From Trichosphaerium sp. ATCC 40318 (lineage: Eukaryota > Protista > Tubulinea), in contig JALMLS010000322.1 in the NCBI GenBank assembly GCA_038496445.1, positions 992,001-1,056,000 on the forward strand: a stretch of 64,000 nucleotides of DNA. Direction: 5' to 3'. Every line of letters starts with the position of its first letter. Positions within the stretch are counted from its first letter, which is position 1. Positions 7,278 to 27,048 of this stretch are shown piece by piece. The position numbers and the translations under genes were made by a program. The notes under the pieces are model-generated. The model was not told the origin of the DNA, did not search any database, and worked only from the letters and a program-made list of their open reading frames with translations.

Positions 7278-7651
7278 TACGACGTTTGTACCCAAAACGT
7301 TTATTGGTTTACTTAAAATCACTATTATGTCACAAACGGACACAGTGACCACTGGCTAGTTCTATCAATCGTCACGCCAGTTACTGTAAATAAGATCTTC
7401 TTTAAACTTGCATTTTGGAAGCGCACTTGTCGTGCTATTTTCACGTGTTGAACTTTAAGTCGTTCTGATGGTTAGAACTGTTGGCATCACGTAGCTGACT
7501 CGTCTTTTCTTTCATTTTCATTGAATTAACACGGTTTGTCAAAACCAAAATCTGGTTTCGCAGTTTTCTGGAAGTTAATAACTAACTGGGCCATAGCCTT
7601 CGATTTTTACATAGCGAAAGCAAATATCTACGACCCGGACCGGATTTGTTG

Positions 7652-10600
7652 TTCAATGATTGGTTATATTGCTTGTGTTCACTTCAATCTTCACAAAGCA
7701 CAACACTGATGGCTGAGATAGCTCTAAGCGGTTTAGACCTTGTTGAGAAGATAGCTGGTATTGTTCAACTAGTAATAGATGTTTACGAAGGCTTAAAGAA
7801 TAACAAGAAGCTATGTGGTCGTCTCGTTGAAAGATTACAAGCAATAGAGGATGTTATACAGCGTACGTTTTAAAGAATGACCTTCACTTTTGTTATTACC
7901 CCTTTTGTGTTAACTATGGCTAGAACCCAATCACAAAAAAGCGTTGGGTGAAGACAGCGCATCAGCTTGTTTGAAAAGACTCCTTAAAGTTTGTGAGGAA
8001 GCACAAAAGTATGTTGAAGAGTTCAAGGACTTGGGATTATTTGGACAGGTGTTCGCATTTCAGTCTGCTAAAGATGACTTTATGGTACTTGTGTTCGATG
8101 CTAGTTACTATTAATTACAGCTTAGGACATTGATAGAAGACTGTCTGATGCGGTTGTCGACCTAAACGCATTGTGCTTATGTAAGTTAGAGACCGCTTTA
8201 TTGTCCAGTGATGAAGTTCAAGAGCTGCTTTGTACACTTCTAATCATTGGTAATTACGTCCTTACGCGTTTAATATAGTGGATAAAGAAACTGGCGCCAT
8301 GGCAATGATGAAAAAAGACAAGACACTGCAGTACACAAACTAGATTTTTTTTTTTGTGTAGTTGTCGACTAAATCGTTTTTAGAATGATCACGTGGTTAG
8401 ATTCTCACCCAGAAAATAATAGTATGATGTTTTAGCGGATTTGTTTTTTTTCTTTATGAAATAGCCAACCGTTCACTAACACGTGCCTGTTTCAGATGTT
8501 TTTATCAAAGCCACTTCAAACGAGAATAAAAATCTGCTTTTTATTCAATGTAAAAGTTACCAAGATGTGCGATCGTAATTTTTGTTTTTACCCTAACTCC
8601 TTTTTTTTGAAGGTGTTCACCAATCTGCTTGCTAACCGCACTCTTGCTAACGAATGCGGTCTGTGGCGTTGGGTACGATGAGGAACGATATTCTGACTAT
8701 GAACTTGTTAACATGAATTGCTAGAGAATTATCTGCAGCGCAAGCCATCTAACGAAAAATGAAGAAGATGGCGAAAACACTTACGAGGACCTTATAAAAA
8801 ACTTGCTAGACCAAAATATGATGGTACCTTAAATCCCCTCAAATAGGTTTGTTGACGACGTTTAGTTGCCAGTGATGGTGTACACTTCAAAACCCAAAGC
8901 TGACACAGTAAGAAAATGTTTGGCAAGCAATGACAACATCTCTTGTCACCCAAATACATGCGCAACATCAATTGCGAAGCACATGAACAAGTATGATCTT
9001 TTACCATGTTTTGTTTTGTTGGTATTAATAGCACGTGCATTAGGTATTGCTGCTTTGAAACTCTTTTGTGGATTGGAGATTCAGATGATGATGAGATTAC
9101 TGCACGTTTAAAGTCACGTGTAGTGTCTCTTGACTAACCTTTCCTTAAGAACACAATTCATGAAATACAGCATAAAGGCGTTGTTGTAGCACATCACGTG
9201 GTATTTGAAGATGATGAGGATGACGAAGGTGAAACTGATGGTATGTTTGGTTTTTATTTAATTGTTTTGATTTACCTTTGTTGTAGTAGAATGGGCCGAG
9301 AAGGTTCTAACAGAAATCCAGGAAACAATTAAAAACAAAGAAAGGTAATCACTTCAGTTTGTTTTTCTTTTTTTACCTTTTCTCGTTTATTCTCACACGT
9401 GATTTGTTTTGTTTAGTAGTATACGCATTCTTGTTCATATTAGTACGTTTGTTTTCTTAGTGTAGTCTTTAAAATTAAAGATCTCAAGTCACAACCGTTG
9501 GACCAAAGACACTCTTCCTAAAATCTTTTTTATTTTTGCCACATCCTTGTCACTTTGTAACTCGTCATATTGAACAGAATAACTTATACATGCCTATTTA
9601 ATATAATCTAAATTGATGTTAGAAAGCGATGAAGATGAAGATGAGATAGAGGAGAAATTGGATCTCATTAAAAAAATTCGAGGAGATTGGACTTGGAAGC
9701 ACAAAGTCATGTTCTACTGCGATGACAAGGCATTTTTGACAGAGCATGTTTCAGAATTTATTAAAGCTGATGGTATTACAGTACGCAAACGACAACAGTA
9801 TTAATACATGACTAACACAAACCAAGGCAACAGACAAGCTTTCTGATGTTGTAAAATATGGTTCAATCCCAAAACCAAAACCAAAAGTAGAAGCACCTGA
9901 AGGAACATTAAAGATAACAAAAATCATCGGCAAAAAGCTGATAGTGTGCGACAGTACGTAACATTAAACGAAAACGATCTTTTTTTTTCTCAGTTTTTTT
10001 CAAACAACATCACGGGATAAAACTATGGATTCTCCTCCCACTTCCAAATCTTCTTCATTAAACAATATTTATTGTATTATCAGATGTACAACTGTAATTT
10101 TATTAATCATTTTGAATAGGGAGATCAAGTGATCCATACATTACTTTTGAACAAAACAAAGTTTTGATTCCAGGAGACAAAGCCAAAACCAAGTATAAGA
10201 AGAGCACCTTAAACCCAAAATGGAATAAATTAAATCTTGAAATGTACGCCAAAGATAGTAATTAATGATATCTTGTTTGTATTTTACTATGTGTTGACTT
10301 ACTTTATCAAAGACCTTGCAAATCTGATGCTACAGTATCTATTGTTTGTTGGGATTGGAACAGATTTGGAAAAGAAATATTTATGGGAGAGGCAGCAATA
10401 GTGTTGTCTACTGATGTTGTGATGAAACAAGCCGATGGACCTGTTGAGTGTACATTCAAATTATCAGATCCAAGCAAACGTGCTAAAAAGAAAAAACCAG
10501 TAAGTCTGCTAAACCTTAAAACTACTCAGCTAGTGATCAAAATAACTAACACCCACGTGTTTCTATTTAGATAAAGACTGGAGAACTGACAGTTACGATG

Positions 10601-10830
10601 CAGTGGATAAAGAAATGATTCTTCCAACGACATTGTATGTGCACTACATGTAACTTTCAATCAATCACTATGTATGAATAAAATCGCACTACAATGTTAT
10701 AACCTTGTCATGGTTCGGTAATACTAGTAGTTCTTGGTGGGTAAATACTTTTGATGATTAACGATGAGCGTTCAACTTTTATTTCTAATTACCTCAATAT
10801 GTACCTGAGCTTGAGCTATGGAAGGCTATT
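7652..10830 (+). repeat. Left arm of a ~3.1 kb inverted segmental duplication (partner 18622-21752)
   Basis: Near-identical to the reverse complement of 18622-21752, including introns, 5' flank (ttcaatgattggtta) and 3' flank (cctgagcttgagctatggaaggctattt). Confidence 0.95.
7709..10618 (+). CDS. MLKL/HeLo-like four-helix bundle + two receiver(REC)-like domains + C2 domain protein, copy A
   Basis: Hand-spliced multi-exon model: MAEIALSGLDLVEKIAGIVQLVIDVYEGLKNNKKLCGRLVERLQAIEDVI...LKRLLKVCEEAQKYVEEF...DDFMDIDRRLSDAVVDL; then ITWLDSHPENN...RIICS...LPVMVYTS; then LLWIGD...IRILVH...DLIKKIR...KVMFYC; then C2 motifs SSDPY, KSTLNPKWN, CWDWNRFGKEIFMG; TGA at 10616-10618. Confidence 0.8.
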
Positions 10831-11083
10831 TCGGCAAAACTCAGATTTTTCAAGTGTTCAAGTATGACGTTTCAACATTCATGAGCACGTCATATAATTT
10901 GATGTTCACGTGCACTATTTAAACCAGTAGTTATGTAGAAACTGTTGAGAAGCCCATAGGAATGTACTTTTTCTGAATTCAGCCTTAACTTCTAAATCAC
11001 TGAATTCCTAAACAGATAAGGCCTTTTTGACCTTAAACGGCCTTCAGTTTGAATACTTATACTCGTAGGTACAATACATCATA

Positions 11084-12474
11084 ATGTACGCAGCTACAGA
11101 AGGCTTTAATGTTGATAGCAAGAGGTATAATCTGAAAACCTTATCTTTTTAACAAACAAATAGATACGATCGTGCAAGGCCTTCTTATAGGCAAGATGTC
11201 GTTGAAAGTGTCATTAAAACATTGGCACTTGACAAGACAAAGACAATCGTTGAAATAGGCGCAGGAACGGGCATATTCACGCGTTTACTAGGTAACTAGC
11301 CTTACAAACGCCAATATACCATAATTGACGTTTATTTAGTTCCAACGAACGCTAAAATCATTGCTATTGAGCCTGTTGAAGGTACGAGTATCTTGTGAGG
11401 CGGTTTAAACCAACATCTATGTAGCTATGAGAAATCTTTTGAAACAAACCCTTCCAGGTTCGTTTTTATGTCGCTTTTATATCCTCTAACACTATTAGAC
11501 ATTGAAGTACATAATGGTAGAGGTGATAGCATACCTTTAGGTGATGGTGTGGCTGATGGTATTGTAATTGCCCAAGCGTTCCATTGGTACAAGAAATGAT
11601 GGTTTAAACATACCAACGAGTACTAGGATGGCAACAAAAGAAACACTTAAAGAACTGTCACGAGTCCTGAAGCCAAAAGGTTCAACGAAATTTTCAAAAC
11701 TCTTGAGTCACGTGTTGTTTTCTTTTTTGAAATCTAAGGATAGGTATTTGTTAAATACTCATAAGCGTATTAGGGAAGGTTGTATTGGTTTGGAATGCAA
11801 TGGATGAGTCCTTTCCATGGGTTAGTTTTCTGTTTGGTTTTTTTTTCTTACAAGAATAAAGGTTAAACAATTATGTGATTTGTTGCACCCTCATAGAGGT
11901 GAAACACCTCAATACTGGTACTATTATAGTGTGATGTTATTGGTGGTTTTTTGAAGTTCACAAAAATATCACGTGCTGATTTAATGTCCTTTTTGTTCCA
12001 AACCTTGCTTCAATTTTTGAAAAGTTTTTATTCAATTGCCTTGTTTGTTACTGACTGGGTATACAAGGCTTGGATGGTGGAAAAAATGTTTCGATGGGCA
12101 AGATATATTTTCAATGCCATTAAATCACCAACATTTTACTGGTGTAAAACAACAAGTGAGCTCTGTGTTAGGTGCGAAAAAAATAGACTCCAAAAATCAT
12201 CATTATTTGTATTCGTCTTTAACGTGCTTTTAGTGATTGAGGACCGTATTTTGAGCATAAGCTACATGTCAAAGCTTGATAAAGAAGTGCAAGAAAAAGT
12301 TAGAGAAAACGTGAAAAAGATAGTGAATGAGAGAAAAGAGAACAAAGACGGTTTGGTAAGTTTAGTTCGGTTCTTCTTTTTTTCTTACAAAAACCCAGAA
12401 TGTTATTAACTAATTTCTTATTATAGTACATCCCATACTACACTGATGTTTTTGCTACAACAAGATTAGATTAA
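11084..12474 (+). CDS. Class I SAM-dependent methyltransferase (Methyltransf_11-like)
   Basis: YDRARPSY, IVEIGAGTGIFTRLL, IIAIEP, AQAFHW, ELSRVLKPKG and terminal IPYYTDVF motifs across spliced exons. Confidence 0.85.
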
Positions 12475-13268
12475 ATGGCTTTTTAACACTAAATATCAAT
12501 AACCAAACACACCTACATACAATAAAAATAACACAAAAAAGGAAATAAAACTCCGTTTGTAACAAAATCCAGTTAGAAGAATCTTTAGGTCAGTACCAAC
12601 GGAAAAAGTAACTAGCCTGGTTGCAAGATATAGTAACGTATCATTGGCTCAAATATAACACATTAGTCTAGTTGTTATATCTTATATACAGGTGATACGG
12701 AGGAAAGAAGATCCACAAATTGGATTTCGGATAAATTCAGTTTTTTTGGATCAGAAAAAGGTTTGAGATAGCTATCAAATCCTTGTACGCATCGGGAACA
12801 ATTACAAGCGTTTCCACATAACCTACACAAAGCACATACAGTACCGCCGTATTGTTTCCCTTGCCCTGGAAGTACATTTTGTATACTGGGCGGTACCAGT
12901 GCATCCACCTTTCAAACTCGTGCTTGTATTGTATAAGGCAAAACCATACCCCTCCGGCTTCAGGATTATATCTTGGACATAGGCTTTAACTTTGACTGGC
13001 CTTTCACTATGATTGATAGTGAAGCCCTAGAGTACAAGGCAATGGCTATTTTTTTCTGCAATTCAGATAGTATTTTTTGCGATTTACGTTGTTGCTAACA
13101 TGAGTTAGCTTTTTCAAAATTTTCTCCACACGTTTCCCATAACATCTCTAGTCACGTGATACTTTGGAGTTAGGTCAGACAAAGTAAAGATATCGCAATC
13201 GCAAATGTTGTAAGAATTATACTTGTACTATCTTCAAGCGCTGCATTTGAATATCTAAGTTAGCCTTA

Positions 13269-13955
13269 ATGACTACGAAAGAAATCGCTCGTCTCAACAT
13301 ACTCCGTCTTCCTGTAGAGATACAGCTTGATCTTATCGATTTAGACTTTGAAGTGTATATAAAGTGGCCTCTCTTATCAAAACACACGGCAACAACAACT
13401 AGGTTCAATACAGAGCTGAATAAACACGGAAAATGGATAAAAAGCAAACCAAAAGGTAAAAATTATCAAAAAGTGTGCCACCAGTTTTGGAACAATGGTA
13501 AACGACAAGGAGAATGTAAGAGATGGTATGACAATGGTGAATTTAAAGACCAATGTACTTATGTAAATGGTAAGCGAGAAGGAAAGTACAAGGGCATGTT
13601 CGAGAATGGGGCACTATGTCAGTGTAATTATGTCAATAATTGCCGTGATGGAGAGTATAAGTGGTGGTATCATACTGGTCAACTTCAGCTACATTGTAGT
13701 TATAAGGAAGGAAGACGTGAAGGAGAGTACAAACGTTGGTACCATAATGGCCAATTGGAAGTTCAAAATATGTGGATTAAAGGCAAATTAGAAGGTGAGT
13801 GCAAGCATTGGTACCTTGGAGGTCAACTATGGGAACAATGTAGTTATATTAGGGGTAAACTTCATGGCAACTACAAGGAGTGGTATATAAATGGTCAGTT
13901 AAAGAGGGAGCGTACTTATTGCCATGGTGCCCTTTTGCAAACTCACTGTTACTAG
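13269..13955 (+). CDS. Intronless F-box-like/MORN-variant (MORN_2) repeat protein
   Basis: ILRLPVEIQLDLIDLDFEVYIKWPLLSK N-terminus, then about 6 repeats of GEYKxWYxNGQLxxxCxYxxGK. Confidence 0.85.
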   Translation: MTTKEIARLNILRLPVEIQLDLIDLDFEVYIKWPLLSKHTATTTRFNTELNKHGKWIKSKPKGKNYQKVCHQFWNNGKRQGECKRWYDNGEFKDQCTYVNGKREGKYKGMFENGALCQCNYVNNCRDGEYKWWYHTGQLQLHCSYKEGRREGEYKRWYHNGQLEVQNMWIKGKLEGECKHWYLGGQLWEQCSYIRGKLHGNYKEWYINGQLKRERTYCHGALLQTHCY

Positions 13956-14439
13956 CATATCTCCTCTTTCCAATAGTAATGGTTACAAACAAACAATAGC
14001 AAACCATTATACGTTATTAGCTTCGATCCCCTGGATCGCATAGCCGGAGACCCTTCCCATTTATTGTTATTAAATAAGAGTTATCTCTTGTACATTTACA
14101 ACAAATTACGTAAATCTATTGAACTTTTCCTGTCTAAAAAAATCATTACACAAATCCGGTTTTTTTCTCGTTTTTAATAAGTACTTATCTTTCACAAAGC
14201 ACTGCACTATAATTCCATCATATACAATAAGGATGAGTTTATAATTTGTCTTATCGGCTGGGTGATTAATTAGCAATAAGAGCCCATCACTAGCTTAAAC
14301 TGATGGTAACTTGTATCACAATCCTTAGAGTATACTTTTGTTGTTTTAATAAGGAATAGTTCTACTCCATTAATTAATACACCAAACGCGGGTATACGTT
14401 AGTTCTAATAAGGTTTATGTCAGGGTTTTTCAAATTTCT

Positions 14440-16100
14440 GGTTATTTGTGGAGAAATTATTTCTTCATGTCCACTTTTGGAACAGTCTTGCTTCTTCTGT
14501 TTGCTTTTTTAAAGCTTCAAGATGGCCAGCTACACCGAGATTTTAGGCTTCATAACAGACGTACTATTCTCACTATCTATAATAGGTGCTCTCTTTACGA
14601 CTCTCTCATTGTAAGCCATCAACTTTCCGTTGTAGTTTTATTACTTACAAGCCTATTTAGTACCCTTTTCGGTAAGATACGAACATATCCAATCAAGGCA
14701 CTCGAACTGGAAAATTACGAATTCGTCTTCTGATTGTGTTAACCTAGTTAATTATTTACCTGTGTGTTACCATATTCTGTGGTCAGCTAGTGTTTGTGGC
14801 AGGGTGGGATTTATTTTGTTACCAACTTTTTTTTAATCACGTGCTTATACGTTTAAGATTCTCTCATGGTTTAGGAAGCAAGATGTGCGCCGTGATAGGC
14901 GCATTGATACATTTTTTCTTTCTAGCGTACGTCCAACTGCTCATTGTAAGTAGAATCTTACTTATCGTATGTTTAGTAATTTTTTTTGGTACGTGTGCAC
15001 AGTTTTCACAAACCTATAACCAGTTTCAAAACATGTTTTTATTTATTGATTAATCATCGCTGTATTCTTAGGTGCTTCTGTGTTGCGTTCAACTTTTACC
15101 AAGTGCGAGAACAATAAAGCAACGCTTTGAGCGATTAATAAATTATTTAGATGATTGTAAAGAGGAACAGCCGTACCAGAGAACTCGAAAAGTGGTATGT
15201 AATTGAAATATATTGTAGTTGTAAATAACTCTATTTTAAGGTACCACATGATAGGATGGGGTTCGGCTAGTTGTTCGTCTTTTGGTTGTTAATCGTTTTA
15301 GGCATTCCTTTGTTGTTTGTATTGGGCGTTGGCTTGAGTAGATCTTATGGACAGACTCTACAAGGAACAGAAGAAGATCCATACAGGGGAGCGTAAGATA
15401 CAAAGAAAGAAAAGCCTCTGACCTGAATCCTTTAGATGCTACCTTAGGTCTGGATTGGCCGTTTTTCTTGGATTTTTCATTCCTGGACTTATAACAATAT
15501 CTGCAAATGCGGTACAAGCCTTTCTATTGATTTTTCGCTTAAAATTTCTCTCAAGGTTTTGTTCTTCTTTGTCGCATCTGAAATTCATGGTACTCTTTCA
15601 AAGGCTCCTGAAACCGAACAAAGAGAAAAAACAAAGGTAACGCCATTTTGTTGTGTTGTCACGTGATTCTCAACTAAATGAACTAAGGAATTCCGTGTTC
15701 TGCTTAGTATCTTTGTAACAGTAGGACTTACGTGGGTATTCGGATTCATAGCTTCTGTTTTGATACTTGTTGTAACCACAACGACAATACCAGGAGATAT
15801 TTTCGAATTTTTGTTTGCAGTTACAACTCCTTTACAGGCACGTGCTTTTCTAATAATCTACCATTTTGGCTTTATTTTGTACTTGATGGTTTTTTGACAT
15901 GTGCCTATCAGGGATTCTTTATATTCGTGGCATACTGCATCAATAGGAAAGTGCGAAACCAGTGGATCAAGTTTTTTGGAAAATGTTTTCCATGTTGTAC
16001 AGTTGAAGAAAAATCAACGACAAGCTCTGCTACCTTCTCTACCCGTGGAAATACAACTTCAGCAGATCGAAAATCTAACTACAACTCACAAAGAGTGTAA
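14440..16100 (+). CDS. Secretin/adhesion-family (7tm_2-like) G-protein-coupled receptor; 5' end uncertain
   Basis: CAVIGALIHFFFL (TM3), WYHMIGWG-IPLLFV (TM4), FFIPGLI (TM5), VGLTWVFG (TM6), LQGFFIFVAYCINRKVR (TM7), S/T-rich tail. Confidence 0.85.
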
Positions 16101-16801
16101 AACTTCTTGTTATGAATGTAGTCGACATCAAATAAACCAGTGTTAAATACACAGTTCCAACTGTACAACCTTTATTTCCGTTGTGAGGTATCTACAAGAC
16201 ACCTGTATAATCGAGTATATACATATGTGATACTCTCATAGAGTCAGTTAGTGAACATTGAAGATAGTACTGTAAAATTACTCATATTGTTCCGAAAGAA
16301 CAGGAACCCTCAAAATGATAGTTGTTGATTTTCGTTTCGTGGTTACTTTAGCTGGACCAACAAAAAGATGATCTTGTTAGGAGAGTTGGCGCCCCCCCAG
16401 CCATTGGTCTTACGGGTGTACAGTGGGGCACCTTTGTATCATTTTAATTTGATACACTGGCACTGGCCATGTTAATGACAGTGCCGGAATGTACATATAG
16501 CCAGTGTAGTTGGTGCATATGTAGCCAACACTTGGGTCCTGTACTGTACCCTTGGTTGAACTACTGCTCCATCCCCTCCCTCTTTTTTGGGGCTTCTTTG
16601 CAGTGTGTAATTCCTTCCTGATGTATGAAGAAAAGTGAAATATTTATGTACCATTCATTTCTTGATAAAAAAAAAAAGTGGTATTGAGAAATGTTGATAA
16701 AACGCAATTTCCTTCACTCCACTACGTTGCGTTGATGTTTATAAACACTTTGTATGCTCGTTTTACATTGATCAAAGGAATTCGATTTTAGTTTCATCGA
16801 A

Positions 16802-17123
16802 TTCACTGAAATATCCAATCAAATACTTCAAATATGGATAATGCACATTTCAGTACGCTAACAAATGCTTGTGAAAGCTATATACACGCGTGGAAACCTT
16901 AGCGGCAAAGTTTTGGTTCAAAAAACGTGCAACTAAACGATAAATTCTTTTTCTGGTTGTATGTCGGTATCTTCACTGAAATATCAATACTAAATACTTA
17001 AATATGGATAATGCATATTTCCAAATGGCATGAACCCTTGTGCTAGCTATTTTCATGTATTGAGAACCATTTCGGCAGTTTTTTGGTCAAAAAACGTGCA
17101 ACTAAACGCTTAATTACTTTTTT
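16802..17123. repeat. Degenerate direct repeat, two units with ~170 bp period
   Basis: ttcactgaaatatc...aaatatggataatgca...aaaaaacgtgcaactaaacg occurs at ~16802 and ~16972. Confidence 0.8.
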
Positions 17124-17641
17124 CCGTTTAACCCACACTGCAAAGTAGCTAACGCTATTCAAACACTATATAGTGTTTGAAGAATGGTGTCAATAACTTT
17201 TTAGCTTGTTACAAGTAATACTCACAAAGGAAATGGTAATCGAACAAAAACCCTAACAACGTTTCTGAGTATGCTCTGTATGGGTTCTCTTCCCTTTGTT
17301 GGTCCTTTTTTACGATTTATTCTTGTATTAGGGCTTTTTTACACCTATACAACCTAAGTAAGTAGAGATTGGTCAAAGTGTACCTATTTTCTTTTTTGAA
17401 GTTACTAGTCTTGATACCTTGTGTGAGCATAACCCACGCAAACCTCGAGCATTGTTTGGTGTAACATTCTTACTCGTTGAGTATTGTGGTCATGCCGTAT
17501 ATGCTACACCCAAGATTAGATTGGCTGTTATTCGCTTTCCTTCCTGTAGTAATACCTGAAAAGAGTACACAAATATTTCGCAGCTTGCCAAGTTACTAAG
17601 AAAACACTATTTTCAAGCTAATGTGACAATACTGGTCAACT

Positions 17642-18319
17642 ATGGTCTGCAACAAAACACGTGGATCAAAGATGTTTTCGCGAACAATGAAGGCTGCACT
17701 CAAAACCAAGGCACGTCAACACTACGTTGTTTGCTACCACTTATGGATATTTTTACAGCCATACACAACAAACTCGGATAATTATAGTCTACTACAGCTT
17801 CCAATGGAGTTACAGCTTGATATCATTGATTTAGATAATGAAGTGTATATAAAATGGCCATTGTTGTCCTTATACACCGCAACAACTTCAAGATTTGACA
17901 ATGACTTGAACAAGCACGGAAAGTGGTACAGAAATGGAAGATCAACATATATAGCCAATAAGAGACACGGTAGCTCTAAAGAGCTAGCCCATTGGAGACA
18001 TGGTCAACAACATGGAGAATACAAGCGGTGGTATCTTAACACCAATCAATTGTACAAGAAGTGTCACTATTCAAACGGTAAGCTTGAAGGAGAGCACATG
18101 CTGTGGGGTTTAACTGGCCAATTGTACCGGCATTGCCATTATGTCAAAGGTAAACTTCATGGAGAATTTAAAATGTGGTGGTCAAACGGTCAGATGCAAA
18201 AAAAGTGCTCATACAGCAATGGTTGTCAGGAAGGCGAAACGAGAGTGTGGAGTAAAGATGGACAACTGATAAATCACAAAACTTATATTAATGGTAAAGT
18301 AGTAGAAGATCATCTGTAG
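17642..18319 (+). CDS. Intronless F-box-like/MORN-variant repeat protein (paralogue of 13269-13955)
   Basis: LLQLPMELQLDIIDLDNEVYIKWPLLS then GEYKRWY/GEFKMWW repeats; true start uncertain. Confidence 0.8.
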   Translation: MVCNKTRGSKMFSRTMKAALKTKARQHYVVCYHLWIFLQPYTTNSDNYSLLQLPMELQLDIIDLDNEVYIKWPLLSLYTATTSRFDNDLNKHGKWYRNGRSTYIANKRHGSSKELAHWRHGQQHGEYKRWYLNTNQLYKKCHYSNGKLEGEHMLWGLTGQLYRHCHYVKGKLHGEFKMWWSNGQMQKKCSYSNGCQEGETRVWSKDGQLINHKTYINGKVVEDHL

Positions 18320-18621
18320 CAGTACTTCTGTGCTGGGTTTGTTGCATTGGTGTTTGTGGATTTTGGTGTCTACAAGTTCGTTAACTGTTCATAAACTTGA
18401 CACTTGTTTTGGTCTTATGGTAATTTGGGTTTAACATAGTGTAAATGTTCTATGCAAAAGAATATGTGCTATGACTTATAGGAGGTCAATGTCGTTAAGC
18501 TTTTCTTCTCCATTTTGTTAATCTCAAAGTATAGGTTCACTGCACAAAGAATAACACGAGCTTTTGAAACAAGATGTGGATTCTAGTAAACAACATCTTA
18601 AGCTCCTCAGCGTTAATCGAC

Positions 18622-21600
18622 AAATAGCCTTCCATAGCTCAAGCTCAGGTATAATTAGAAATAAAAGTTGAATGCTATAACATTGTAGTGATTTTATTCA
18701 TACACAGTGATTGACTGAAAGTTACATGTGGTACACATACACCAATGGTGTTAAAATCATTTCTTTATCCACTGCATCATAACTGTCAGTTCTCCAGTCT
18801 TTATCTAAATAGAAACATGTGGGTGTTAGTTATTTTGATCACTGGCTGATTAGTTTTAAGGTTTAGCAGACTTACTGGTTTTTTCTTTTTAGCACGTTTG
18901 CTTGGATCTGATAATTTGAATGTACACTCAACAGGTCCATCGGCTTGTTTCATCACAACATCAGTAGACAACACTATTGCTGCCTCTCCCATAAATATTT
19001 CTTTTCCAAATCTGTTCCAATCCCAGCAAACAATAGATACTGTAGCATCAGATTTGCAAGGTCTTTGATAAAGTAAGTAAACACATAGTACAATACAAAC
19101 AAGATATCATTAATCACTATCTTCGACGTACATTTCAAGATTTAATTTATTCCATTTTGGGTTTAAGGTGCTCTTCTTATACTTGGTTTTGGCTTTGTCT
19201 CCTGGAATCACAACTTTGTTTTGTTCAAAAGTAATGTATGGATCACTTGATCTCCCTATTCAAAATGATTAATAAAATTACAGTTGTACATCTGATGATA
19301 CAATAAATATTGTTTAATGAAGAAGATTTGGAAGTGGGAGGAGAATCCATAGTTTTATCCCGTGATGTTGTTTGAAAGAAACTGACAAAAAAAATATCGT
19401 TTTCGTTTAATGTTACGTACTGTCGCACACTATCAGCTTTTTGCCAATGATTTTTGTTATCTTCAATGTTCCTTCAGGTGCTTCTACTTTTGGTTCTGGT
19501 TTTGGGATTGAACCATATTTTACAACATCAGAAAGCTTGTCTGTTGCCTTGGTTTGTGTTAGTCATGTACTAATACTGTTGATGATTGCGTACTGTAATA
19601 CCATCAAGTTTAATCAAGTCTTTTACATACTCTGTCAAAAATGCCTTGTCATCGCAGTAGAACATGACTTTGTGTTTCAAAGCCCATTCTCCTCGAATTT
19701 TTTTAATGAGATCCAATTTCTCCTTTATATCTTCTTCATATTCATCGCTTTCTAATATCAATTTAGATAATACTCAATAGCAGGTATTAGTTATTCTGTT
19801 CAATATGACGAGAAAGGTACAAAGTAACAAGGATGTGCAAAGATGAAAAAATTTTAGGAAAGAGTGTCTTTGGTCCAAACGGTTTTGACTCTTGAGATCT
19901 TATATTAAGAAAACAACGTACCAATATGAACAAGAATGCGTATACTACTAAACAAAACAAATCACGTGTGAGAATAAACGAGAAAAGGTAAAAAAAGAAA
20001 AACAAACTGAAGTGACTACCTTTCTTTGTTTTTAATTGTTTTGTGGACTTTTTCTAGAAGCTTATCGGCCCATTGTGCTAATACGACAAAGTTAAATCAA
20101 AAACAATTAAATAAAAACCAACTTACCATCAGTTTGGTCAGCTACATCACCTTCAAATCCGAAGTCATGGAATTCGTCATCGTCATCATAATCATCTTCA
20201 AATACCACATGACGTGCTACAACAACGCCTTTATGCTGTATTTCACGAATTGTGTTCTTAAAGAAAGGTTAGTCAAGAGACACTACACGTGACTTTAAAA
20301 CATACATTAATCTCATCACCACATGAATATCCAATCCACAAAAGAGTTTCAAAGCAGCAATACCTAATGCACGTGCTATTAATACCAACAAAACAAAACA
20401 TGGTAAAAGATCATACTTGTTCATGTGCTTCGCAATTGATGTTGCGCATGTATTTGGGTGACAGGAGATGTTGTCATTGCTTGCCAAACATTTTCTTACT
20501 GTGTCAGCTTTGGGTTTTGAAGTGTACACCATCACTGGCACCTAAACGTCATCAACAAAACTATTTGAGGGTTTTAAGGTACGTGTATATAGGCGTCTAG
20601 CAACCTTTCTATAAAGTCCTCGTAAGTCATGATGTCACTATCTTCTCCATTTTTCGTTCGATGGCTTGCGCTGCAGATAATTCTCTAGCAATCTATGTTA
20701 ACAAGTTCACAGTCAGAATATCGTTGCTCATCACGTACCCAATGCCACAGAGCGCAGTTGTCCCTAGTAAGATTGCGGTTAGCATTCAGATCGTTGTACA
20801 CCTTCAAAAAAAAAAAAGGAGTTAGGTAAAAACAAAAACTATGATCGCACTTCTTGGTAACTTTTACGTTGAATAAAAAGCAGGTTTTTATTCTCGTTTG
20901 AAGCAGCTTTGATAAAAACACCTGAAACAGGCACGTGTTAGTGAACAGTTGGCTATTTCACAAAGAAAAAAAACAAATATCCGCTAAAACATCATACTAT
21001 TATTTTCTGGGTGAGAATCTAACCACACTATCATTCTAAAAACGATTTGATCAACAACTACAAAAAAAAATTCTAGTTTGTGTACTGCAGGTTCTTGTCT
21101 TGATGCATTACTGTATTGGCAGGGCTTGAACCCACTATATTAAACGCGTGAGTACGGAATAACCAAATTCAAAATGTACAAAGCATAATTTGAACTTTAT
21201 CACTGGACAATAAACCGGTCGCTAACTGAGATAAGCACAACGCGTTTAGGTCGACAACCGCATCAGACAGTCTTCTTTCAATGTCCTAAGCTGTAATTAA
21301 TAGTAACTAGCCTTGAACACAAGTACCATAAAGTCATCTTTAGCAGACTGAATAGAGAACACCTCTCCAAATAATGTAAAGTTTTTGAATTGTTCGACAT
21401 ACTTTTGAGCGTCCTCACAAACTTTAACGAGTCTTGTCAAACAAGCTGATGCGTTTCCTCCCTCCAACGCTTTTCTGTGACTGGGTTCTAGCCATAGTTA
21501 ACACAAAAGGGGCAATAACAAAAGTGAAGGTCATTCTTTAAAACGTACTCTTTAACACGTCATACAAATCTTGTAATCTTTCAACAAGACTACGACATAG

Positions 21601-21752
21601 CCCCCTGTTACTCTTTATGCCTTGGTAAATATCTACTACTAGTTGAATAATACTAGTTATCTTCTCAACAATGTCAATAACGCCTAGATCTGCCTCCATC
21701 AGTGTTGTGTGTTGTAAAGATTGAAGTTTAGCGCACGTAACCAATCATTGAA
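18622..21752 (-). repeat. Right arm of the inverted segmental duplication
   Basis: Reverse complement of 7652-10830; lacks a ~65 bp segment present in the 3' flank of the left arm. Confidence 0.95.
18757..21699 (-). CDS. MLKL/HeLo-like four-helix bundle + two REC-like domains + C2 domain protein, copy B
   Basis: Same exon/intron layout as 7709-10618; starts MEADLGVIDIVEKITSIIQLVVDIYQGIKSNRGLCRSLVERLQDLYDVLK; C2 exons almost identical to copy A. Confidence 0.8.
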
Positions 21753-22799
21753 TAGCCTTTACTGATTACGATCTACTGCTGTTTTGCGTTTAAATTACTG
21801 TTAACAGAATGGTACTTGCTAAAACACGTGACTGTGAAAAGTATTATACGTATCATTCAAGTTTGCTAATCTTTGCAACTTTTTGCTGTTTGTGACTTTT
21901 GGTTTTCGTGTTTAGTCAGATCTGACAGATCTTGTTGGTTCTTGCAAGACCTGTTAAAAACTACGAGATCTGAAAGGATCTTGTCAGTTCTGCAAAACTA
22001 AATCCACATCCGTAGCATGAACAGATTATTGCGACACACGTGTTTTTAGCCAAATATGTTTTATTTGGTGCATTAGCAAGTAGTGCTGTTGGCGTCTCTG
22101 AGACCTTTCAGGTATAGCACTTGTCTCATATACTCCAAAACGGATTGTTACACTATGCTAATGCCGTACACTTAGCGCAAGATAGTAATGGTTGTCAGGA
22201 AGGAGAAAGAAAAGTGCTCTATCCTCAAATCATGGAGGACAAATTGTCAGTCTACTACTTCAGAACATAAACAAGAGGCTGTTGGTGACAAGCATTGTTA
22301 ACATCTATCTTTAAGAAACAAGAACCATTGAAACACCTTCTTCGCTTGAGGTGCTATTGAGCAAAGTCGTAAGTCCACAAGCTGCTATTTAAACAGTTTT
22401 CTCTGGCTACAATGAAAAGGACCTGATCACAATATTGGGAAGTGTTACTGAGCACATGCACTACACTCAGAGAAAGCAGCATTCCGAGATTTTTTGTACA
22501 TGGAAAGAAGAGAAACAATGTGGCTGTCACATTACTTCAAGTTTTTTTGTAGTTTTGCACGTGAAAGACCATTTTATTTTTTAGTCATTGTTGTAGTTAT
22601 TGCGCTACTGTACTCAATGTAGCGTACCACTTAAGGGAGTTAAGTCTTCTTCAATCTTATACAAAGACGTATAACGCCATATTGAAAAGTACATGTCCAA
22701 TTATACTCAAGACCATCCGTCACGTAAGTACAAAGCAGATAGGACCTTTATTTTTGTTAAAAACTTTCCAAAACGAAAAGGAAGCTTCTAAATCATTGT

Positions 22800-25700
22800 A
22801 GATAAAACACAAGAGCATATGGAATTCTTAATTGAGAAAATAAAACAAAACGATTACGCTAGCACGATATGCGATTTCTCAGTTGCGTCTCCGAAAAAAT
22901 TTGTTTTACTTTAGTTATCTTCACGCAGTATTTATTGTCTGACGCTATTGTTTAAGGGATATGGATATAAAATATGCCAGATGCTTTCGAAATGTTTAGG
23001 AGCTAACACATACGTTAAAGAACTCCACCTACAGCAGAATTCTCTTCGTGGTAAGGTCAGTTGATACGTAAAAGTTTAAAAAACGGAAAAGAAATTCCCT
23101 TTTTTTTTTATCAAACGCACGTGACCTTTTGTAAAAAAAGGAAATTATGGCTTGTTTCGATCTTATCGATGGTATAGTTCTTAGTACAAATTAGGATTTA
23201 CGTTACATGAAGAAGGTCTTGATGGCAAACAATTCATTGTCGTCTCTGCTCTTGGCAGTGCGTGTTTTTTACTTTTTTAATTAAAATCATGATGACGTTA
23301 TTCGTAGTCAAATAAAATAAGGTCCGAAGGATGTGATATCATATCAGGTGCGAGAAGCCTACGCACACAATTGGATTTAACCCACATTAATTTTAGAATA
23401 CCTTATGGATAGTGCATGTTCGTTGAGGGAGCTGGACATTAGCAAGAACAGCATAGGTATGTAAAACAAACTCAAAAAAAAAAATTAAACACTAAGTCTG
23501 GCAGGTCGCTCTGCTACAAGAAAGCTTGGAAAGGTAAGCTAGTGTACAACGATAATTGATAGTCTATTAATTCATAAAAAGGCGCTGGCGATCAATACTA
23601 CACTCTCCAGCCTAAACATAAGTGCACGTTTTATGTTTTTTTCCATTATATTTTTTCTAAAGTTCTATTTTAGTTTAACACTTTTGGCACTGAAGCTATA
23701 TCGAGTATGTTAATTGTCCCAACGCATATGGAGTTTCTAAATATTCTAATAGAGCTTGCATCTTCACTTAAAATAAATACAACCCTGGAAGAACTTAATA
23801 TTGCTTACACATGTGATCAAATTCGTGAGTTTTTTGATTTGTCTTGGCTTGTTAACGACTTACTCAAAGTAAAGAACTCCGCGATTTATCTTCTCTGACA
23901 AACATAACTTCCTTAAATATTTCCAATAACGACCTTGGTCGCATTCCTACAAGCATCGGATACTTAAAGCGTTCGTATTATTTTCTTTATTTTTCTTGGA
24001 TTTATTTTTGACATACTTGTGTTTACTCCTGATTTGATAGGTCTTGTATCACTTGATTTATCTAAAAATAATCTCGAAGAGTTACCTTTATCTTTGGGTA
24101 ATCTAACAAATTTAACTAAGCTTGTACTTGATGATAATCCGCTCACTAAAATCAATCAGAAGATAAGAAAGAAGTAAGATTGAAATTTCTAAACAAATTA
24201 TTCATTGACGTTTTTCTTTTTGTGTAGGGGTCCTGATAGTATCATTAAGTATTATAGAGATTCTCTATCTATTTCCAAGAAGCCTTGGACGAAAGTCAAG
24301 GTTGTTATCATTGGTAGCGAGAAAGTATCAAACCTCCTTTTATTCAGTTTCTGATTTTTTATTGATTATTTAGGCAGGAAAGACACATCTTGTTCGTAGA
24401 CTACAGGTACACCCATTCACTTTCTTTGGAGATGATTATCTAAAGGACATGTATAGAAAAGAAAATATGGTTTAGATGAGATGAGCACTGAATGTATTGA
24501 AGTTGCTTCGATAGGCTCAAAGAGCCTCGCTCTAAATGTTTTTGACTTGGGTACACTTTCCACTCTACAAATCTCCTATCTTCATTCTCGCTTAAAAACT
24601 GCAAAAAACGGTTGCTTTAGACCGTTACAACGTCAAATTTTCGAAGAAAAAAACATGTGTATTAATCCCTATTTAGGAGGTAGCCAAGTATTTCGTTTAA
24701 CACATAGATTCTTCTTTTCAATGGGATCTGTATATATCATTGTACTAGATGCAACTAAATCACAAGATGAATCTTCTTCAACGTCTACTTATTGGATAAG
24801 ACAGATAAAAGAGGTACACCACAAACAAACAAGTGAAAAAAAAACCATTCACCTAAATTACTTACAAGGCTTGTGGATTGACAATCATAAAAGTGAACAC
24901 TCATTTGGACTGTGTACTAAAGCCATGGTGTTAGGTTTTTACGTTATAACTTACTTGTGTAGGTATCAAGCGATGATGACTATACAGTGCCCTCATTTGA
25001 GGAACCAAGTACAAGCCTTTCTAAACAACTGAAGTTAGCGCCTTGTTTCGAAACAACAATAAGCTGTAAAACTAGTGAGGTATGCCACATTTAAGTTTCT
25101 TCCTCTCAGTCTTCATGAATGTTAGTACTAAGTATTCCATAGGGTATCCCAAAACTTCGTGCTAAGATAAGAGAAGTCGCAATGAAAGTTCCAATATTTG
25201 GTCAACAAATACCAAAATATTACTGGGTATGGTTTTTTTGACCTTTTCACGGTTTCTGTTTAATTCTAGTATTTAGGATTTTGAAAAGAAGTTATCACAG
25301 AGAACTGAGAAGTTGTTATACTGGAGTGAAGTTAAAAAAATGTCAACAGTGACTGAAAAACAGCTTGAAGACATGCTTCAATTTTTTACAATTGTTGGAT
25401 CTGTTATCTGGTATAATAAGGTATTCTGGGCCACTTCACGCCCTTGTCTATCATTTGACTAAATTCCATCGTGTATGGTTATTAGGGATCTCTAAAAAAT
25501 CTGATTATTCTTGACGCTCAGTGGTTGTCTGACTTATTGGATTCATTACTTAACGTTAATATTAAGATGCCGAATTGTTTATTAAACCATGACGATATAA
25601 TTAATTTATGGAAAGGGAAATACTCTAAAGCTATTTATCGTATATTATTTAAGCTGTTGGAGCACTTGGAACTAATATTTCCACTTGAAGGTACGGCCAC

Positions 25701-26785
25701 AGACAGTCAACAAAAATCGATTGCGAAACTAAAACCAGAAAAATTCTAAGAGTTGCCTTTCAAGCACCTTGTAGGGAGCTTAAGCTGCTTTTTCTATTGT
25801 TTGTTGTCAACACTCTTTTCAGTTAAATAATTTGGTGTTCTTGTCATAAACATTATTACTCTATACTTAGAACGAGGCAAAATCTAACTTTTTTTTAAAG
25901 AAAAGCCCGGCTTCAGCATCGTTCCCTGTACGTCAGCCTCATGTGTTTCGTTGGTTTGTAACACTCTTGTTTCTTAGGCATGTTGAAAAACGAAAAGCCA
26001 GGGATAATAGACTACGAACCTGAGTCACCTCCAGTAGATATGTACCAATATTGTCACGTGTACACTTTTGATTTTTTGCCTGTTGGTTTTTTTGGAAGAT
26101 TATATGCTAGTTTATGCAATTCTAAAAAGGTAAGCCATTTTGACGCTCTTTATTGTATTTTGTCGTTTTAATATGCTGTAGACATTTGATATTTTGAGCC
26201 CGTGGCGCCATGGAACAATGATATTATGTGATGGACAAGAAGGATATCTAGAGTACAAAACCTAAAAGCATTTTTTGGTTACTAAAAAACGTTCAAGGCA
26301 TGATATAGAGAAGTTTAAGCTTACTGTGGCTGTAAGAATGCTGCGCTGCGAGTAAGATTACTTGCTATAATCAAACACACTAACTTCATGGTAGTAAGCG
26401 TTTAGTCGACCTATTCTTGATGCTGACGAGTACAGTTGATTCAATTCTAAAAAAATATTAGTATGAGTCTTTTTCTCTTTTTTTTCTTTTTCTGACCTTT
26501 TTTCAGTCCAAGGAATTATGAACATGTGACTATTAAAATACCTTGCACAAGGTGCATATATTCTAGAAACATAGATGATCATATTTTCTCAAAGAAAGAA
26601 CTAACAAAGGTGTGAAATGCAACAAAATCTTATTTTTTTAACAAATGCAATAGGCATGTGCTGACGGCTCACTATCTGTTCCTTGTGGTACTAATTCAAT
26701 ACGTATAGAAGAACTTGCGCCAGGTACTACCGCCAGATTTTTTTTAAATTTGCCATAATCTAAAGATATACTACAGGCTTGGTAA
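22800..26785 (+). CDS. Roco protein (LRR-Roc-COR) with no kinase domain; 5' exons probably extend to ~22400
   Basis: RI-like and typical LRRs (LRELDISKNSIG, LDLSKNNLEELPLSLGNLTNLTKLVLDDNPL); Roc motifs KVVIIGSEKAGKT and VFDLGGSQVFRLTHRFF; COR motifs IILDAQWL, LLEHLELIFPL, FDFLPVGFFGRL; ends IEELAPDILQAW*. Confidence 0.85.
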
Positions 26786-27048
26786 GCGACTTCCAACACA
26801 AGCAAAAAAAACGTGAAAATGTAGAATAAAAATTAAATTATTTATAAACCACATTTATACAAAATCATTGTGTCTACAGTATCTATGTGCGTATTACACG
26901 GTACATATACACTTTCAAAAAGAAAATATCACTTTGGCAGTGACAAAAATAAGGAACTGTTGGGCACCACTTCTTGCAAGAGTTTTTTCTATGTAACTTC
27001 TTTATTTGCCTTTTTTGTTATAGTTAACTCTGCAACATCTACTAAACA

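Follow-up and report, generated by a model that had tools for sequence, protein, structure and literature searches.

Two copies of a single gene form the inverted arms of a stretch of 64,000 nucleotides (nt), here called the window, from the protist Trichosphaerium sp. ATCC 40318 (GenBank assembly GCA_038496445.1, contig JALMLS010000322.1, positions 992,001 to 1,056,000). The two genes, referred to as A and B after their arms, differ in a strikingly uneven manner, as strongly diverged exons at the 5′ end stand next to introns that are almost the same in both arms. We conclude that this patchwork probably results from copying between members of the gene family, combined with fast evolution of the part that encodes the head of the protein. 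A preliminary description of the same DNA had proposed diversifying selection on a helical bundle, patchy gene conversion between the arms, or both, and the analysis reported here bears on each of these proposals.

Divergence along the two arms

A global alignment pairs positions 7660-10705 on the forward strand with 21750-18672 on the reverse strand, making the arms an inverted duplicate in which the genes are convergent, tail to tail, with both reading frames intact. Gene models were predicted from splice signals, reading frames and comparison among copies, and their coordinates are collected in Table 1.

The contrast between exons and introns is marked at the 5′ end. Exon 1 differs between A and B at 33 of 151 nt (21.9%), while intron 1 (7863-7923, 61 nt) differs at a single position (1.6%). 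Exon 2 follows with 24 of 161 nt (14.9%), intron 2 with 2 of its 41 nt (4.9%) and exon 3 with 11 of 106 nt (10.4%). By Fisher tests the difference is significant both for exon 1 against intron 1 (p=1.1e-4) and for exons 1-3 against introns 1-2 (p=1.6e-4). At the protein level, alignment confirms that 18 of 42 residues differ in the exon 1 stretch, and the exons encoding the C-terminal C2 domain are almost identical (6 differences in 486 nt). The values of one and two bases given for introns 1 and 2 in the preliminary description, as well as the near-identity of the C2 exons, were upheld on recounting. Its wider claim that the usual exon/intron pattern is reversed holds locally, for exons 1-3 and introns 1-2, and fails for the gene as a whole, in which divergence is 9.7% in exons and 7.7% in introns. 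Introns 3, 6, 11 and 13 are 15-25% different between the arms. Gene-wide silent divergence (dS, 0.105) is close to intron divergence (0.09), so there is no general intron/exon anomaly, only local blocks. Of the four edges of the conserved blocks around introns 1 and 2, one falls on a splice site, and the exon parts of the block at 8060-8180 encode a motif that is kept in all nine family members.

From intron 14 onwards, A and B are 1-4% apart, and copy C, a third member of the family, is 21-26% away from either of them in introns 15-16. The C2-coding third is thereby marked as the likely site of recent conversion from arm to arm, or as a segment with a younger history. Exon insertions and deletions (indels) are multiples of three in all three pairs among A, B and C (3, 3, 3, 3 and 39 nt; 3, 3, 12, 6 and 3 nt; 3, 12, 3 and 48 nt), whereas intron indels are of all lengths. 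The full-length copies thus preserve their frames and show no decay.

Exchange among copies and constraint on the protein

Genes A and B were aligned with copy C, each variable site was classed according to which two copies agree, and the site patterns were permuted. Over the whole gene, adjacent sites carry the same pattern 232 times compared to an expected 162 (p<=1e-4), and p is again <=1e-4 when the 5′ part is taken by itself, as two thirds of the gene. The longest runs comprise 13 sites where A equals C and 18 where A equals B. A stretch of nine A=B sites in intron 12 gives way to thirteen A=C sites that extend across exon 13 into intron 13. Kinship also changes along the gene: A is the outlier in exon 1 (A-B 21.9%, B-C 14.6%, C-D 11.3%, where D is a fragmentary fourth copy), A and B agree at all 41 positions of intron 9, and in intron 15 they differ by 2.4%, compared to 25.9% for A and C. 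The homogenised tracts cover silent and intron sites, and so go beyond what protein constraint alone would account for. Taken together, the mosaic site patterns and the shifting kinship show exchange among the two arms and at least one distant copy, evidently by interlocus gene conversion or recombination. The proposal of patchy conversion between the arms is therefore supported, with the addition that a copy 0.5 megabases (Mb) away takes part in it. We also see a second local instance of an intron that is more conserved than its own exons, in the A-C comparison of intron 17 (10500-10570), where none of 60 aligned bases differ and the flanking C2 exons are 7.5-8.3% apart.

The ratio of replacement to silent divergence (dN/dS) in exons 1-3 lies between 0.86 and 1.34 among A, B and C, with no value significant (A-C 0.86, B-C 1.02), and reaches 2.46 for B-D. 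Over exons 1-14 the range is 0.84-1.48. In the C2 domain it is 0.26-0.34, which is significant for the pairs that include C. Lineage-specific changes in exons 1-3 amount to 72 replacement and 17 silent, compared to a neutral ratio of 3.7:1 (p=0.36), and the lineage of fragment D, with 19 replacement to 3 silent changes, resembles the pooled ratio. Variable sites among A-D are distributed as 50, 31 and 33 over the first, second and third codon positions, with no excess at the third. Many of the replacements are swaps among I, L and V or among K, R, E and Q, and the helix pattern is kept; conservative swaps of this kind fit the first-position excess. These comparisons show almost no constraint on residue identity in exons 1-14, the first three quarters of the predicted protein, with a frame that is strictly kept, and they show purifying selection on the predicted C2 domain. 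As silent and replacement divergence are similar in the head exons, diversifying selection on the helical bundle was not demonstrated.

Competing explanations

In the explanation that we favour, the arms are an inverted DNA duplicate of a single 18-exon gene from a family of about nine members. Sequence is exchanged among the arms and copy C, head and middle evolve in a near-neutral manner with respect to residue identity, and the C2 domain is constrained. Conversion would then persist where the copies are still alike, which is to say in conserved exon segments, in the tiny introns between them and in the C2 third. Fast-diverging exon segments would escape, either because mismatches block exchange or because homogenised variants are selected against, and the outcome would be an exon 1 at 22% beside an intron 1 at 1.6%. 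Short introns are able to diverge freely, as is seen for intron 8 (42 nt), which is 26-29% different from copy C.

Several observations weigh against this explanation. In each of the six pairs that can be formed from copies A-D, divergence is higher in exons 1-3 than in introns 1-2, and for A and D a contiguous non-coding stretch of 479 nt shows 7.3% difference compared to 19.1% in the exons (p=1.3e-7). Conversion tracts falling at random should not avoid exons this consistently. In five of the six pairs, dS in exons 1-3 (0.07-0.21) exceeds intron divergence (Ki) in introns 1-2 (0.03-0.10), mostly at borderline significance. A-B replacement divergence (14.0%) is higher than pooled silent divergence (9.2%; p=0.0006, or p=0.004 when splice bases are removed), and in A-C and B-C the two are equal. 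The A-B excess would be expected from selection for difference and equally from homology-dependent conversion. Lastly, the divergence of an intron is weakly linked to that of its flanking exon edges in A-B (rho 0.47, p=0.056), and no such link is found in the pairs with C.

Some of these points would be expected if arms-race diversifying selection on the head and on parts of the middle were the main cause, with tracts that erase residue differences being rejected and exon silent sites hitch-hiking; we regard this as possible but rather unlikely. It would account for the A-B replacement excess, for the higher divergence of exons than of non-coding DNA in every A-D pair, and for the missing third-position excess in frames that are strictly kept. 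The B lineage carries 16 replacement changes and 1 silent change, and by eye there is no B-specific change in introns 1-2. When sites are classed by their variability in the distant copies E, F and G, dN/dS rises above 1 for B-D only, with a value of 4.3 at the variable sites (one-sided p=0.002). Selection of this kind also agrees with the model of Teshima and Innan, in which peaks of divergence arise under gene conversion and linked silent sites stay diverged too (PMC3924837). The preliminary description had reasoned that silent divergence in exon 1 as high as replacement divergence would speak against selection. This is roughly what we see, as dS is 0.15 and dN 0.29 with no significant difference, but the comparison is not decisive, because the peak-of-divergence model itself expects high divergence at linked silent sites (PMC3924837). 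Against selection as the main cause, dN/dS does not significantly exceed 1 in five of the six pairs, the pooled counts of lineage-specific changes do not depart from neutrality and are matched by those of the pseudogene-like copy D, and many replacements are conservative and keep the helices. The A-B excess could even be mechanical, if conversion is limited to conserved segments that hold no replacement differences.

Other explanations place the cause in the introns, in the exons or in the assembly. It is quite improbable that introns 1 and 2, together with the proximal upstream DNA, stay constant through a function of their own, for instance as carriers of splicing signals or of a regulatory element, while the exons drift. 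Introns 1, 5, 9 and 17 are indeed low in divergence in A-B, A-C and B-C alike, splice signals may by a rough estimate occupy a third or more of the bases of a short intron, and the palindrome CACGTG is enriched in the window, with copies in several conserved introns. However, CACGTG is absent from introns 1 and 2, a search of positions 7400-22000 against Rfam (E<=1) gave no match, the predicted fold of intron 1 is no more stable than those of shuffled sequences (z=0.76), and the similarly short introns 8 and 11 differ by 15-29%. Introns 1 and 2 keep their positions in all family members, but in E-I nothing of their sequence can be recognised, which speaks against an intron element common to the family, and fragment D retains both introns although it is probably dead. 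Even less probable is a mutational input focused on exons, by segments from other or lost copies or by local hypermutation, that lifts silent and replacement divergence together. Measured against non-coding DNA, the two are elevated to about the same extent, about eight differences specific to A with respect to C and D cluster in the final 22 nt of exon 1, and 9 of 21 polarised A-unique sites agree with the outgroup copy E; moreover, only exons can be aligned across the family, so distant donors would be possible for exons alone. Yet the assembly contains no donor for the unique end of exon 1 in A (<=3 mismatches), the nearest paralog to this exon is copy D at 69%, the differences are mostly lineage-specific singletons, and neither a C-to-T nor any other signature of hypermutation is seen (transition/transversion ratio 0.8-0.95). 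An assembly artefact, caused by mis-placed haplotypes or by a mosaic from read mis-mapping when paralogs were polished, is scarcely credible. Nothing was found in its favour: the arms are inverted on one contig of 1.18 Mb around 8 kilobases (kb) of unique DNA with differing outer flanks, they are about 9% apart and carry in-frame indels as long as 39 nt, which is far beyond haplotype level, and paralogs on other contigs share the block pattern.

The gene family, its setting and related systems

We find 18 exons per gene rather than about 15, as the small exons 8279-8330, 8384-8421 and 9417-9442 lie inside what appear to be long introns, and a 15-exon model was dropped because blastn shows 84-91% conservation of parts of these three apparent introns in distant paralogs. 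The 18-exon model is also open in copy C, where it encodes 576 amino acids (aa). An alternative exon 3 donor at 8250 was rejected due to an in-frame stop in B, and the shared GTACA donor was taken instead. Intron lengths are mostly 41-74 nt. All introns of these models have GT-AG borders except intron 10 of gene A, which has a GC donor; it may still be spliced as a GC-AG intron, or arm A may be defective in splicing here.

Table 1 Predicted features of the two arms and the spacer, and related gene copies elsewhere in the assembly. Positions refer to the window unless a contig is named.
Feature	Position	Strand	Description
Arm A	7660..10705	+	little more than a single gene; homology reaches from 50 nt upstream of the ATG to about 90 nt beyond the stop codon
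Arm B	18672..21750	-	reverse-complement copy of arm A
Spacer	10706..18671	.	about 8 kb of unique DNA separating arms A and B
Gene A	7709..10618	+	18 exons, 583 aa, complete open reading frame
Gene A exons 1-9	7709-7862, 7924-8084, 8126-8231, 8279-8330, 8384-8421, 8496-8566, 8613-8672, 8725-8823, 8866-8990	+	
Gene A exons 10-18	9032-9101, 9150-9240, 9290-9344, 9417-9442, 9623-9780, 9827-9953, 10120-10243, 10313-10499, 10571-10618	+	
Gene B	18757..21699	-	18 exons, 597 aa; all 17 introns GT-AG
Gene B exons 1-9	21699-21549, 21487-21327, 21285-21180, 21134-21086, 21035-20998, 20921-20851, 20801-20739, 20684-20583, 20541-20417	-	
Gene B exons 10-18	20375-20306, 20256-20127, 20077-20020, 19947-19922, 19751-19594, 19547-19421, 19255-19132, 19062-18876, 18804-18757	-	
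Upstream motif TTCAATGATTGGTT	7660..7674	+	start of arm homology; common to copies A-D; CCAAT-box-like words inside
Head region	7709..8231	+	exons 1-3 and introns 1-2; predicted helical N-terminal domain
Near-identical block	7863..7947	+	intron 1 and first ~24 nt of exon 2; kept in A-D, not in E-I
Near-identical block	~8060..8180	+	end of exon 2, intron 2, start of exon 3
Arm-homogenised block	8836..9085	+	exon 9, intron 9, start of exon 10; includes a 134-nt stretch without difference
Intron 10 donor, arm A	9102..9103	+	GCACGT; GTATGT in B, GTACGT in C
C2-coding third beside the spacer	9781..10640	+	exons 15-18 and introns; A-B ~1-4% apart, introns included
MORN-repeat gene in spacer	13269-13955	+	confirmed
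MORN-repeat gene in spacer	17642-18319	+	confirmed
Copy C	G000:C2:~499.8-502.7k		same contig as the arms, 0.5 Mb away; loci L003/L044
Copy D	G000:C140:100320-101828	-	5′ fragment duplicate of arm A; loci L004, L043
Copy E	contig C5		
Copies F and G	contig C249		tandem
Copies H and I	G000:C5:343835-350633 and 361291-354263		second inverted pair, head to head; loci L045, L046

The genome (70 Mb in 642 contigs) is intron-rich and holds about nine members of the family, A-I, with A, B and C being full length and highly similar. In copy D, exon 5 and most of exon 4 are missing, exon 6 has lost 1 nt, and the copy breaks off inside exon 8, so that it is probably a pseudogene; its exons 1-3 are still open. 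A and D alone share 386 nt of upstream DNA, and an origin of this DNA from a repeat element was rejected, as there are only two copies genome-wide. The second inverted pair, H and I, has arms of about 6.8 kb around a spacer of about 3.6 kb, and its copies are 94.8% identical over the 3′ two thirds of the gene and 87.9% identical over the 5′ part and the upstream DNA.

Pfam scans were run exon by exon, and spliced sequences were used only for dN/dS and for local tblastn mapping onto paralog loci. MLKL_N (PF22215) matches the first two exons below its curated cut-off of 27 bits, with 17.1 and 14.7 bits in arm A and 12.0 and 13.9 bits in arm B. The matches are collinear in both arms, as exon 1 covers profile positions 1-40 and exon 2 covers 52-94. 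In a scan of the whole genome with PF22215 nothing exceeded the threshold and only sub-threshold exon matches were seen, and exon-wise family profiles compared with solved structures did not find MLKL. The C2 profile (PF00168, cut-off 22 bits) is matched by exon 16 with 22.9 bits (profile positions 21-52) and, collinearly, by exon 17 with 20.3 bits (positions 62-96). The middle exons gave no match in the exon-by-exon Pfam scans. The protein thus appears to comprise a helical head that weakly resembles MLKL_N, a middle part and a C-terminal lipid-binding C2 domain. The head has a weak sequence likeness to the four-helix-bundle executioner domains of the MLKL, HeLo and plant MLKL type, and the arm genes differ from MLKL itself in that they have no pseudokinase and fuse the head to the middle part and the C2 domain.

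The spacer holds two MORN-repeat genes, as the preliminary description had stated; the methyltransferase and G protein-coupled receptor that it also placed there gave no Pfam match on the single open reading frames tried. Flipping of the spacer through recombination between the arms is plausible, because the innermost ~860 base pairs of the arms, adjoining the spacer, are ~98% identical; the assembly presents the spacer in one orientation. A 43-nt inverted match (10789-10831 and 18622-18664) lies about 80 nt off the main arm alignment, a displacement that points to an insertion or deletion in the 3′ flank of one arm. On the outer side, the upstream DNA of arm B (21750-26800) is unrelated to that of arm A, and the upstream motif where arm homology begins is a putative promoter element. 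The G+C content of the window is about 36%. CACGTG occurs in it 58 times compared to 8.7 expected, a number that no shuffled sequence reached. Seven copies lie in arm A (8390, 8480, 9032, 9115, 9195, 9396 and 10554), several of them within short introns or at intron edges, and four are kept in arm B.

The pattern is an instance of a phenomenon already described, mosaic divergence of paralogs under interlocus conversion. In the red/green opsin pair, a diverged exon 5 is flanked by homogenised introns (PMC3924837). Mosaic divergence under conversion is also reported for the Tigriopus GOT1 paralogs (PMC3728101), and a model of this type is reported for HMA4 (bioRxiv 10.1101/2025.10.29.685298). 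The arm genes share with the opsins and the Teshima-Innan type the linkage of paralogs, the alternation of homogenised and diverged blocks, near-identical introns next to diverged exons, and incongruent kinship. They differ in that exchange takes place among three or more loci, one of which lies 0.5 Mb off, and in that the arms are inverted rather than tandem; in addition, dN/dS is about 1, and there is no clear functional split and no known selected site.

Conversion from arm to arm is also a feature of genomic palindromes and inverted repeats, such as the palindromes of sex chromosomes. These share with the window inverted arms, a unique spacer, and near-identity beside the spacer that includes silent sites, whereas the arms studied here are only 3 kb long and 9% diverged overall, with high identity in the inner third alone. 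Accelerated exon evolution is seen in venom genes, among them the snake PLA2 genes. Venom families with accelerated exons and conserved introns include three-finger toxins, which undergo segment switching (PMC2474615), and the process named ASSET (PMC2711939) is of this type. Such families resemble the arm genes in being multigene families with exon segments that diverge far more than the introns between them, and, locally, with exon silent sites above introns. Unlike in venom families, gene-wide silent divergence is similar to intron divergence in the arm genes (0.105 compared to 0.09), a dN/dS significantly above 1 was not shown, segments are not swapped for unrelated sequence, and the protein looks intracellular rather than like a secreted toxin.

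It is tempting, if rather doubtful, to view the MLKL-like/C2 family as protist effectors of cell death or immunity that diversify under pressure from pathogens, with conversion reshuffling the copies and selection preserving divergent heads. If true, this would be a paralog-level analogue of the evolution of major histocompatibility complex (MHC) or resistance genes in a unicellular eukaryote. Selection on the head, if real, would point to a diversifying module of cell death or defence in a protist, and would be relevant to the early evolution of MLKL-type executioners. In the explanation that we favour, the arms would be a small and clean example of how exchange between copies, together with near-neutral protein evolution, can mimic the signature of an arms race, and the lesson would be that silent sites and third copies need to be checked before selection is claimed.

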